Part shown: positions 20,701-25,300 of the stretch, piece by piece
Position numbering within the stretch: position 1 is the first letter of the stretch
Layout: every line of letters begins with the position of its first letter
Origin: Stylophora pistillata
Taxonomy: Eukaryota
NCBI RefSeq assembly: GCF_002571385.2
Contig: NW_019217786.1
Location: forward strand, 572,365 to 636,364
Direction of reading: 5' to 3'
Length of the DNA stretch: 64,000 nucleotides
The notes under the pieces: model-generated
What the model was told of the DNA's origin: nothing
Seen by the model: only the letters and a program-made list of their open reading frames with translations
Database searches by the model: none
Position numbers and translations under genes: made by a program

Positions 20701-22285
20701 ATATTCCTCCTCTTCCTTGCTTCTTGGGAAGTAAAGAGGCATGACATTCTTGTATATGGCCTTCCACAGAAAGCGAAAAAAAAAAAAAAACCTTAGGATG
20801 AATGACTCAAAAAAGGGTCTTCAAAATTCACCTTCTTACCTCATCAGCATTTTCAGCAGAAAAAACAACAAGTTCAATATCAGAAAACTTTTCTAGAAAT
20901 CGTCTGACAGTTCCTGTAACCAAAATATAAAACTATCAAACCCTGCATCTGTGTTTTCTAAGTAATGCTACAAACTTATATGTAGATGTTGACACTAATC
21001 AATACATGATATAACTTTTTCAGTCTATCCAAGCTATGTAATTAAACTTTGATGGGGGTACAAAGATGTGAATAAAGAGAAAAATTAAAGAAAGACAAAA
21101 ACAAAAAATACACCAAAAAAATATAAATTGTTCAACAAGAGATACAGATAAGACAGGTTTACAGAATCCAAAATTTTTTTTCCTTTTACACAAAACAAAA
21201 TCGAAAAAATAATTCTGATACTCAAATCAGGACTTACGCAAAGCTATGTGGGCACCATCTTCAGGGGGGTAGCCTCTTCTGGATGTGTTTATTACACAAA
21301 GACCAACAGAGGTAATTCTGTTCTCTCTAAATCAAACAATATGCAACGTTAGTGACTATATGTATGATGCACGATCCTCGCAGTAGATAGCGCTATTTAA
21401 GCAATAGCGAAAATCAGACCTGAAANAAATCAGGCCTGTACGGGATTTGAACCACTGACCTCTGCGATACTAGTGCAGCGCTCTACCAATTGAGCTAACA
21501 AGCCAACTGGGAGCAGGCCGTTAAGTTGATTCGTAATAAACACGTGAAAGTGATAAATCAGATACAATGAAATATATGAAGTTCATATATTTTGAATCCC
21601 GTACAGGCCTGATTTTTTTCAGGTCTGATTTTCGCTATTGCTTAAATAGCGCTATCTACTGCGAGGATCGTGCATCATACGTATCTAACACCGCAGTTCA
21701 AAATATATGAACTTCATATATTTATTGTATCTCATTTATCACTTTCACGGGTTTATTACGAATCAACTTAACGGCCTGCACCCAGTTGGCTTGTTAGCTC
21801 AATTGGTAGAGCGCTGCACTAGTATCGCAGAGGTCAGTGGTTCGAATCCCGTACAGGCCCGATTTTCGATATTGCTTAAATAGCGCTATCTACTGCGAGG
21901 ATCGTGCATCATACGTATCTAACACCGCAGTTCAAAATATATGAACTTCATATATTTCATTGTATCTGGTTAGTGACTATGTCAGCCATTCTTATGGTAA
22001 CAATAATTTTCCCACCTTGTTTTCCCAGTCACAAGGATTAGGCACCCAATGGGTAAATGAGTCTACGGTGCTCTATGTTTTTAGACTGGGTCTTAGAAGA
22101 CTCCTATATCTTGTTACAAAGCTCATCTCTCTATAAGTAGGCTTTGTTAAGGGCTGCTTTTCGTTAAAAAGATCCCTTGGATACAAGGCAAACCCACAGA
22201 GGACTCATTTTGCAGAGCTAAAGGTGATGTAGCTGGAAGCAATCATGGGTGATGCGACTCATGAAACCAGTGGTGCAGTAATAAC

Positions 22286-22322
<37 letters not shown>

Positions 22323-25300
22323 GTTTTATTTCAACTGATAAAACTAATCAGCAATATGCTAGATTGGCTGGTATAAACTAGTGATCAGCATGATAAATAG
22401 TATCAATTAAAATCAAAGGAGAGACCCTATAAGGAACTGAAGTCTAAATTAAAAGAACAAAGTTATATATAGAAAAAAGGCTGATAGTTTCGAAAGAAAC
22501 TGTTTGGGGCTGCATTGGTGGGAGTAATGAAATAATTTGGATATATCGACAAAGTTGAAATGGTAAATTGGCCACCGTAATGATTACAAAAGCTGACGTT
22601 TCGAGTGTTAGCCCTTCGTCGGAGCGAAGGGCTAACGCTTGAAACGTCAGCTTTTGTAATCGTTATGGTGGCCAATTTACCATTTCAACTTCGTTGATAT
22701 ATCCAAACTATATATAAAAAAGCTAATACTTATTTTAAACTACATATTAAATGATTACATTTGTCGTATTCTAAAAAATATTTAAAAACTATTGCCTTAA
22801 ATTTAGATAAAGACTGTATCTCTCGAATCTCCTTAGGTAAAAGATTCCACTCCCTAGTAGCAGTACATTTAAATGACGTTTGACCTATTTTGGTCTTTGT
22901 AGCAACAATATTCAATAACGTAGAATCTCTAAGATCTCTAGTATGAAAGGCTGATCTCTTGGGGAGATAGTTCTCTAATTGCTGTGGGCAATTTAAATCA
23001 TGTACAATCTTAAAAACAAGATTAAGTCTTAAGAATCTATGTCTACTCTCTTAAGACAATAAAGAAAGCTTACTACACATTTCTTGAGAACATGTATTAT
23101 GACTTGTAGAGAGGATGGTATGCATGGCCTGATTTTGCAACCTTTCTAAACGTTGTGAGTTGTTCTTTCCACAGGTTACAATCAATCAGAAATCAATCAT
23201 CTATTTAAAACTCTGATTCTGCCAATTTTTCACAGTATAATAACTTCAGAGATACTTTCTCAATGTAAGTCTCGGAACACGCAGGTAGATGAATCACTAT
23301 CAACAGAATGTGCCACAGCAGGGAGAGTTTTCTACATCTTTTATAATCTTTTATAATTTGTATGCTTCGGATTTTAACTTGTAACATAGGAAATGTATTT
23401 TTATGCTATGAACAAATAAAGACATATTATTATTATTACTTACTTTTGAAAAACTGATCTATTACACACCACACAGACAAATACCTCTCACAAGACTCCC
23501 TAGTTTGCATTTGGTGTCCTAATAGAATTACAGACTTCAACTCACTCTTAGGTAAGTCAGGTTCAACTTTCTCTAATACACAAGTCATACAGATTGATAC
23601 TAAGCAATAACTGACAATTTTCCCAAGAAATGTCCAACAATTCTTAAATTACCCACCTCACTATTTTCATTACACTTCTGTAACAAGAGAAAAGAGCACT
23701 CTCTGCCGCAGTTTTGTATTTGATGTTGTATCGTGGACCCACGGTGTGAATAACAAATCTACAAGTTGCAAAATGAGGACAGTTTAACTCCTGAATAAAG
23801 GTAACGAGCAGTGGGATTACTGCTGCAGTTAGTTTAAGAAATCTACAGACAACACATGATAACATAATATATCATTAAAAGGAGAAAAAAGATAACAGAT
23901 GATAACATAGTATATCAAGAAAAGGAGAAAACAACTCGCCACCTTTCCATTTTGTTAATGGATAACATTTTGTTTGGGAAATTTTAATTCCAAATTAGCC
24001 AATTATATTAAGCTTATTTCAAAGATTTGCATCAACAAATCTGTATAATACTCTTATCTGTATGTTAAAAAATTTGATCTAAAAATATCCTCCCTCATCA
24101 CAGGATTTTGTTTTTTTACTCCAGTTTCAACTTCCCACATGCATCCATACCTTGATATATCCAAGCTAAACATGAAACAATTGTTAAATCATTCTTAAGC
24201 ATAGTATCAGTACTGTAAACAGTAAAACTGTGACTGAAATATTTGGTCTTGTATAGTTAGATTGGAGGTTACCATATTACATACCTTGCTGGTAGACAAT
24301 AGCCCTTTGAAATTTTAGCTTCTCCAGTTCTGCAACCTGATAACAATGAAGATATCAAGCTTCCATTTAAAATTGCAATAAAAAAATACCATCAGTTATA
24401 CATCAAAATATAACATCACAGCTTGGTTTGATGATGAACCATGGGTAAGGAAATCATAAAGAAAGAAATACATCAACCAACATGAAGCAATAAAAAAGTT
24501 AACTATGATTCTGCTCCAGAATAGCTTTAAACACATATTGTTTACTTGATGCTAAAGAACAAGAAAACAATAATCATCTCTTACCAAGTAACTGTGTTTT
24601 ACACTCCTGCAAGAGTTCTGGACCTGCTGCACGATGGATTCTTTCACTTAACATTCCTTTGCTACTTAAAGATTCATTTGTAGTGTTAACTATTGCAATA
24701 GTGTTCAGTTTAGTGATATCACCAGACCTAATAGTTAGAAAAAATAACAAAAATTATTTAAATTAGTCTCTTTTAAATGTAAAAACCCAAAGAAACAGGG
24801 AAGCATAGTAATTAGTCCCAAGCAAAAATCACCCTTTTTGGTGGTAACAAAGTAACTAAGTATACAGTAATATACAAGCCTTAGTTGGAGAGTCTGTTGC
24901 AGTTCAGTTCTATCCTTAGTTTCTTTAGCTTTAGCCAGTTATCATTAGTGATAAGATACAACCACAAAGCCCATGTAGTTTGGGCTAGCAAGTGCAAGTG
25001 TGTGCAAAAGGTCCACAAGGGGTTCTGGTACAAAAATTACAGAGTTCCCGTTAATGCACAGGTGTGCGTCTTATACGTACAAAAAATGAAAATGACACAC
25101 AGTTTTTGCCAATGTGCGTCCTCGGGATGCAGGAAAATATATTTGATATTTGAAAGAGGAAACCTGAAAGTGATACAGATCTGGGGGATGATACCCAAGT
25201 GAAGAAATGCAAATTTTGTCCTAAATGGCCGGAGGAGTTTCAATGGTTAAAATATGATTCGCTGAAAAATAAATGGTTGGTGTTGAGAAACACGAGCACA

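Follow-up and report, generated by a model that had tools for sequence, protein, structure and literature searches.

How does a short, non-coding repeat that carries a transfer RNA (tRNA)-like sequence in its middle come to be inserted as two inverted arms with their 3′ ends facing outward? The question is raised by a 64,000-nt stretch of contig NW_019217786.1 (positions 572,365 to 636,364), hereafter the window, from the 398-Mb assembly of the stony coral Stylophora pistillata, in which ARAGORN and Rfam together return five to six tRNA-Thr(AGT) calls, every one of them within a repeat of about 250 bp. A sequence-only reading of the window had proposed that this repeat is a non-autonomous element copied from a circular or multimeric RNA by the reverse transcriptase (RT) of a Penelope-like element (PLE), with the tRNA in the role of a hammerhead ribozyme. 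Our analysis shows that the repeat is a young, abundant, non-coding retrotransposon family. Its insertion geometry matches both the published PLE signature and that of a PLE family of the same genome, and on these grounds it is very probably copied in trans by a PLE reverse transcriptase/GIY-YIG endonuclease.

Insertions in the window

Mapping by blastn to a reference unit of 251 nt (L003:1253-1503, a natural copy and not a consensus) resolved each of the four window insertions into a minus-strand arm followed by a plus-strand arm (Table 1), bearing out the common plan of outward-facing inverted arms, variable junction and target-site duplication (TSD) that had been read from the sequence. The TSDs measure 8–14 bp, and the outer ends of each insertion map to two different places in the unit, one to about position 200 (the short end) and one to about 251 (the long end, about 50 nt further). 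The inverted arms of insertion 1 are 96–98% complementary, with an internal direct repeat spaced 234–250 bp; since the best copy elsewhere reaches only 92%, the likeness of the two arms points to a single event and a single template. Insertions 2 and 3 represent a diverged subfamily (B), about 80–85% identical to the reference unit, and insertion 4 occupies an AAT-rich microsatellite. Past a run of 16 N, positions 62281-62469 repeat almost exactly the direct arm of insertion 4 together with its right flank (61976-62250), and this segment looks like an assembly or haplotype duplicate rather than a sixth insertion.

Insertion geometry across the genome

For a wider sample, we combined the window with 30 further genome loci. 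Forty-eight of the 56 arm 3′ ends in this sample fall into one of the two end classes (23 short, at ~200; 25 long, at ~251), for which uniform placement would give a binomial p of ~1e-31, so that the two fixed outer ends noticed in the window are a property of the family. Furthermore, one short and one long end are clearly paired in 15 of ~19 two-arm insertions, a result with a chance of ~3e-5 if ends were drawn independently; in the remaining four, one end is divergent, truncated or gap-limited, and the pairing holds in every clearly resolved case. Two-arm insertions are ordered minus then plus, the exception being one complex locus (L009), and all ten opposite-strand neighbour pairs less than 700 bp apart among the first 100 genome matches show the same order. 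The sample shows neither random 3′ ends nor a common start at the tRNA 5′ end, nor fixed terminal inverted repeats with TSDs of constant length. The TSDs are 8–14 bp long (median 11; 8–15 by automatic candidates) and mildly AT-rich (0.68 versus 0.61 for the window).

Arm 5′ ends (n = 54) are scattered over the whole unit and somewhat more frequent at 208-233, close to the tail hairpin (14/54). The inner junctions of the window lie in the T-arm of the tRNA (unit 108, 111 and 117; e.g. 46860-46890); given that the sampled junctions spread over the unit, with their largest cluster at the tail hairpin, a stop at the T-loop is not a general rule. Arm lengths in the 30 loci range from 0.15 to 4 units, and arms longer than one unit always run on head-to-tail, which implies that the template is multimeric or circular. 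Single-arm, partly tandem insertions with TSDs are also present (L022, L023).

The unit length of the family is about 247–253 bp, and the head-to-tail period of ~250 bp suspected from the window recurs in arrays, the longest of at least 10 units, that have periods of 247, 248, 251 or 253 bp. Units that are 100% identical occur at dozens of loci, which marks the family as very young. A 33-nt pattern from the 3′ half of the tRNA, searched with at most two mismatches (reversed-pattern control, 0), counts 10,391 tRNA-like units in the whole genome, roughly 0.65% of its length. An apparent strand bias, in that the top-listed matches were all on the plus strand, was rejected as a listing artefact, the pattern counts being 5097 forward and 5294 reverse. 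Two large inverted insertions were also recorded, one with three minus units followed by six plus units (G000:C1:1026539-1028818) and the other with seven minus and then two plus units (G000:C2:1567505-1569464); the period is 247 bp throughout both, so that both arms would derive from one subfamily template.

The unit and its tRNA-like part

The tRNA-Thr(AGT)-like sequence was confirmed to be internal, followed by a conserved run of T and then by a module of three hairpins (Table 1). Both ends of the element are unique sequence next to hairpins, and neither a LINE-derived (long interspersed nuclear element) nor an A-rich or simple-repeat 3′ tail is present. The short end is located at the base of a small hairpin whose loop is AC-rich (CATCA) and which is itself inside a longer stem, and the long end lies ~10 nt beyond the tail hairpin; the three hairpins of the 3′ module are conserved, with compensatory changes in two pairs. 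With an internal tRNA, no simple tail and 5′ ends that do not fall at the tRNA start, the architecture is not that of a classical short interspersed nuclear element (SINE), as the sequence-only reading had stated.

In local alignments, the tRNA-like part is the segment best conserved between subfamilies (97% versus 81–89% elsewhere), an indication that it is of importance to the element; selection probably acts on it in master copies. Its A and B boxes are intact and its Rfam tRNA scores are 34–58 bits. In the reference unit 3 of 21 stem pairs are mismatched (31-39 A/C, 50-64 G/G and 51-63 U/C), and with the cloverleaf not intact, the notion that the element carries functional tRNA-Thr genes of the host was rejected.

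Two roles had been suggested for the tRNA, as a promoter for RNA polymerase III (Pol III) and as a processing signal. The first is unlikely, because a T6–T7 run situated 2–3 nt past the tRNA and kept in both subfamilies would stop a Pol III transcript before both RT start sites, which argues against a promoter role of the SINE type. As for the second, arms spanning whole tRNAs and several units indicate that uncut RNA is copied. Three of the 54 arm 5′ ends fall at the tRNA 3′ end (unit 125-127, beside the RNase Z site), and at the tRNA 5′ end none lies within 5 nt and two lie within 8 nt. The tRNA-like part thus neither forms the 5′ head of a SINE transcribed by Pol III nor determines where templates end, and a tRNA processing signal replacing the hammerhead is without support from the insertion products. 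A self-cleaving ribozyme was sought as well: over 21300-22950 no such Rfam family matches at E ≤ 1, the only hits being the tRNA and false hits to hairpins, and no CUGAnGA...GAAA boxes were seen by eye in the unit. Naiad PLEs are devoid of hammerheads. Together with the dispensability of hammerhead cleavage for PLE insertion in vitro (see below), this means that nothing must take the role of the ribozyme.

Table 1 Features of the window (window coordinates) and of the reference unit (unit coordinates)
Feature	Position	Strand	Basis and remarks
Insertion 1, left TSD GTTAGTGACTAT	21348-21359		exact 12-nt direct repeat of 21969-21980
Insertion 1, inverted arm	21360-21596	-	blastn u214>201; ~0.95 unit; short end outward at 21360; tRNA-like 21432-21504
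Insertion 1, direct arm	21591-21968	+	blastn; ~1.6 units; long end at 21968; tRNA-like 21788-21860; one unit boundary crossed
Insertion 1, right TSD GTTAGTGACTAT	21969-21980		
Fifth copy, single 5′-truncated arm	39440-39586	-	blastn; unit 60>205; ends at short end; partial tRNA match 39525-39586
Insertion 2, TSD	46591-46600 and 46967-46976		about 10 bp
Insertion 2, inverted arm	46601-46875	-	blastn; long end outward at 46601; tRNA-like 46725-46796
Insertion 2, direct arm	46873-46966	+	blastn; from tRNA 3′ part to short end
Insertion 3, TSD AATTCTCT(CT)	at 47265 and 47646		
Insertion 3, inverted arm	47277-47409	-	blastn; long end outward
Insertion 3, direct arm	47407-47645	+	blastn; ~0.94 unit; ends at short end; tRNA-like 47502-47574
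Insertion 4, inverted arm	61868-61975	-	blastn; long end outward
Insertion 4, direct arm	61976-62163	+	blastn; ends at short end; tRNA-like 62018-62090
tRNA-Thr(AGT) calls	21432-21504(-), 21788-21860(+), 46725-46796(-), 62018-62090(+), 62324-62396(+)		ARAGORN/Rfam
Weaker tRNA-like match	47502-47574	+	Rfam
Hammerhead-like element 1	4268-4530		9-bp TSD GAAGTAAGA; 82-nt inverted arms; ~64-nt one-sided extension at left
Hammerhead-like element 2	22480-22711		87-nt arms; ~52-nt one-sided extension at left
Reference unit, leader	1-54		54 nt
Reference unit, degenerate tRNA-Thr(AGT)-like sequence	55-127		73 nt
Reference unit, T7 run	about 130-136		
Reference unit, 3′ module	137-251		~115 nt; three hairpins
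Reference unit, short end	near 200		after ...GTGCATCATACG
Reference unit, long end	251		after 19-nt AT hairpin, then ...TCATTGTATCTG

Transcripts of the element

The unit is present in six poly(A) RNA sequencing (RNA-seq) runs from several studies. Two raw-read libraries were taken as stranded on the basis of a strand bias of ~1:3.5 over neighbouring flank, and the signal in these two libraries is passive co-transcription of many dispersed copies. Loose read ends occur in them at unit ~200 and ~251, where the reads lead into diverse AT-rich sequence, and provide independent confirmation of both termini; neither read starts nor read ends pile up at the tRNA borders. Of the earlier claim of a circular or multimeric RNA template, the part that stands is the one required by the head-to-tail arms; neither a circular nor a unit-length RNA can be seen in the RNA-seq data, which come from libraries poorly suited to small structured RNA.

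Penelope-like elements of the same genome

The genome is rich in PLEs, with 1590 GIY-YIG and 2645 RT candidates at first look. One family (PLE-B) combines RT with a GIY-YIG domain at the C terminus within one open reading frame (ORF). In another (PLE-A), copies end at either of two termini 13 nt apart, and each of the three inverted pairs joins one short and one long end, the same plan as in the tRNA-bearing element; for the pair in L036, no TSD is evident.

An autonomous partner was sought among L031-L083, which comprise GIY-YIG families A–E, the L039 type and RT-only picks and represent at least eight GIY-YIG or RT families. Queries for blastn (word size 7) and nhmmer were the entire unit, the leader together with the 3′ module, and pieces of subfamily B. 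The sole matches were an independent insertion of the element (L060/L062), a piece of a third subfamily next to L043, and the head of an unrelated tRNA-SINE in L073. What had appeared to be a shared SINE core at L043:2200-2290(-) proved to be that third-subfamily fragment, beside an unrelated palindromic repeat. The palindrome (L043:2284-2349, G000:C24) is ~66 nt long, matches both strands and gave rise to many of 250 first-look candidates. The L073 head (L073:2140-2222, G000:C340), located downstream of a PLE RT locus, is a different tRNA-derived sequence that has A and B boxes and no ARAGORN call, and except for the boxes is unrelated to the Thr element. Runs of N of 0.1–2.9 kb lie directly beside many PLE ORFs in L031-L083, in keeping with published comments that short-read assemblies break at inverted and tandem PLE structures.

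The two window elements that had been labelled hammerhead elements of the same plan do share inverted arms and a one-sided extension with the tRNA-bearing insertions. The label itself was not confirmed: no Rfam hammerhead model matches either of them at E ≤ 1, and the CUGAnGA...GAAAC boxes are visible by eye only. They belong to a separate, very abundant short family outside PLE-A. One such element lies just downstream of an endonuclease domain (L039), and we considered whether these elements are pseudo-LTR (long terminal repeat) pieces of an autonomous PLE; this was rejected, because PLE-A ends at fixed sites and a hammerhead-like element merely abuts one copy, which argues for a separate family. 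The insertion is found exactly at the PLE-A terminus in L061 (4056|4057). In the PLE-A copy there, a hammerhead-like box (CUGAGGA...GAAAC) precedes the 3′ terminus by about 100 nt (L061:3940-4056, G000:C780). This copy is adjoined by a LINE, recognizable from an open frame of 730 aa that contains an APE-type endonuclease domain and an RT domain (L061:3-2192(-)).

Mechanism and alternative explanations

PLE insertions are 5′-truncated partial tandems, often preceded by an inverted 5′-truncated copy and bearing a 30–40 bp tail at one end only (Craig et al., PMC8557442). For a PLE protein studied in purified form, cleavage and extension were observed on both strands of the DNA (Frangieh et al., PMC11167929). 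Reverse transcription by this protein begins inside the RNA, at two neighbouring sites of an AC-rich stem-loop, and the tail corresponds to the stretch between these sites; the protein prefers AT-rich targets and does not need hammerhead cleavage (PMC11167929). The resulting insertion signature is called unique to PLEs by the same authors (PMC11167929). The coral tRNA element reproduces every product-level feature of this signature, as the earlier claim of a Penelope-type geometry had implied, and mobilisation by a PLE is accordingly the explanation in which we place considerable confidence. A transcript of tandem copies, probably produced by read-through from neighbouring promoters, would be bound via the hairpin module. 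The later steps can be read from the insertion products: both target strands were cut 8–14 bp apart, as the TSDs show, and cDNA synthesis began at the two fixed internal sites, unit ~200 and ~251, with one site used per cut in two-arm insertions. Both cDNAs then extended 5′-ward over a variable distance, from less than one unit to at least ten, before being joined in the middle. The outcome is two inverted arms with outward 3′ ends, one of them ~50 nt longer, along with single-arm, partly tandem insertions.

Several observations weigh against PLE-type mobilisation. Stranded reads cover the element equally on both strands and 73% of them extend into unlike flanks, and no dedicated template RNA is seen in the stranded RNA-seq. 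The covariation in the hairpins is thin (2/29 pairs), and the tail of ~50 nt differs from the published 30–40 bp and from the 13 nt of PLE-A. Moreover, no autonomous PLE with the unit in its pseudo-LTRs, as anticipated by the sequence-only reading, or sharing the leader or 3′ module was detected by blastn or nhmmer in ~60 sampled PLE loci, many of which have N runs precisely at the expected place of their 3′ ends; this is the chief weakness of the explanation.

A more specific version of PLE-type mobilisation would make the tRNA-like module an essential working part of a ribozyme-free, PLE-dependent element. An RNase P cut at the tRNA 5′ end might fix where the template ends on its 3′ side, 54 nt beyond the long RT start site, or else the tRNA might recruit TFIIIC and Pol III and keep master arrays open; we regard this as rather unlikely. 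If true, the family would form a separate class of Penelope-dependent SINEs, with the fold of a host tRNA standing in for the hammerhead and perhaps with a cycle through multimeric or circular RNA. Similarly doubtful is a ribozyme-free retrozyme, in which a multimer cut at the tRNA by RNase P or RNase Z, or a tRNA-driven Pol III transcript, would yield a unit-length or circular template. The conservation of the tRNA-like part and its boxes would fit such an element, the arrays of identical units would be compatible with rolling-circle copying, and three arms do begin next to the RNase Z site; yet the 5′ ends as a whole are not clustered at the tRNA ends, many arms contain whole tRNAs and several units, showing that uncut RNA serves as a template, and the T6–T7 run would halt Pol III ahead of the start sites. 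RNase P and RNase Z products carry 5′-phosphate and 3′-OH, which are not the ends joined by RtcB. To this can be added the three mismatched stem pairs and the lack of strand bias and of a read pile-up at the tRNA borders in RNA-seq, as well as the fact that PLE insertion proceeds in vitro without hammerhead cleavage (PMC11167929). By analogy with the anole PLE, for which the minimal 3′ boundary is at +172 and the starts at 111–118 (PMC11167929), the 54-nt leader approximates the length of downstream RNA that this PLE needs, such that an RNase P cut could conceivably set a workable template 3′ end.

Mobilisation by enzymes other than those of a PLE, or from a source other than the ~250-bp unit, accounts less readily for the ends. 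An ordinary tRNA-derived SINE moved by a LINE, its inverted arms arising through twin priming, would explain the A and B boxes; LINEs with APE and RT domains exist in the genome (e.g. L061:3-2192(-)), and TSDs of 10–15 bp are also typical of LINE-mediated insertion. However, twin priming yields one fixed and one variable end on non-overlapping adjacent segments, whereas here both arms are fixed-ended and overlap in content, and every two-arm insertion that is clearly resolved has one short and one long end. In addition, the tRNA lies away from the 5′ end, a poly(A) or simple-repeat tail is lacking, and insertions occur as tandem multimers. This reading is already contradicted by the end statistics, and its probability is very small. 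PLE insertions being heavily 5′-truncated, the arms might also be extreme (pseudo-LTR) remnants of an unseen autonomous PLE with a tRNA in its 3′ region, concealed by the N runs that hide many PLE 3′ regions of the assembly; this too is improbable, because arms exceeding one unit restart the ~250-bp unit, up to at least 10 times, and never continue into coding sequence, and the independent insertion in L060/L062 is the only occurrence of the unit in ~60 PLE loci. An origin at the DNA level, from a foldback or MITE-type (miniature inverted-repeat transposable element) transposon or from a satellite spread by recombination, is suggested superficially by the inverted arms and tandem arrays, but it has next to no likelihood: arm lengths and inner junctions vary between copies, leaving no fixed terminal inverted repeats, TSD length varies (8–14 bp), and the outer ends differ from each other in sequence and are defined only in the sense of one strand, so that this reading is already contradicted.

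PLE transposition is the least understood mechanism of retrotransposition, and the model of two start sites rests on one reconstituted lizard element. The ~10,000 short, young and alignable products described here record both start sites, the short/long pairing rule, the junctions and the targets, and the family might be used to test that model, both as a natural data set and as a compact template. If the element is indeed PLE-mobilised, PLE dependants need not carry a hammerhead, which makes a need for the ribozyme in mobilisation less plausible. In practical terms, the count of tRNA genes in this coral is too high by thousands of Thr(AGT) pseudo-genes, and the inverted tandem structures may contribute to assembly gaps.

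Comparison with known systems

Non-autonomous PLE dependants are already known, namely retrozymes and MRC1, as is a SINE-like family combining a tRNA-like sequence with a hammerhead (Sm-alpha); a tRNA-bearing, hammerhead-less PLE dependant was not found described in the full-text literature searched, a scope outside which Repbase and Dfam lay. The coral 'CMITE' elements (PMC2872659) are piggyBac-related MITEs and different from the tRNA element. With PLEs such as Poseidon of Anolis, Naiad and Neptune, the coral element shares partial tandems, an outward inverted 5′-truncated copy, a one-sided extension, two internal RT starts, targets that are mildly AT-rich or microsatellites, and TSDs that vary (PMC8557442, PMC11167929). 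Unlike them, it has no ORF and only ~250 bp, a ~50-nt rather than 30–40-nt tail, a tRNA-like sequence and no hammerhead, and it shares no sequence with any sampled PLE. MRC1 of Chlamydomonas, non-autonomous relative to Chlamys, resembles it as a non-coding PLE dependant with pseudo-LTRs and multicopy head-to-tail insertions (PMC8557442), whereas MRC1-type elements share 3′-end sequence with the autonomous family and have no tRNA.

Classical tRNA-derived SINEs (SINE2) likewise combine a tRNA-like sequence with A and B boxes, a non-coding nature, thousands of copies and TSDs; however, their tRNA forms the 5′ head, acts as Pol III promoter and is not followed by a terminator, and their tail is LINE-derived, none of which is true of the coral element. 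Metazoan non-LTR retrozymes, presumed to depend on PLEs for their mobility and numerous in a coral (Cervera & de la Pena 2020, PMC7229834; bioRxiv 10.64898/2026.07.22.740005), are similar in their short non-coding units (170–400 bp), their tandem arrays of dimers to tens of units and their TSDs of more than 4 bp, but are defined by a hammerhead ribozyme and circular RNA, whereas the coral unit has no Rfam ribozyme match at E ≤ 1. The closest precedent is provided by the short tandem and dispersed repeats Sm-alpha and Sj-alpha of Schistosoma, in which tRNAscan-SE calls thousands of tRNA genes (tRNA-Gln-TTG in S. mansoni) and which belong to the hammerhead/PLE world (PMC2770079, PMC4209133); unlike the coral element, in which only the tRNA-like part is present, Sm-alpha also has an active hammerhead.

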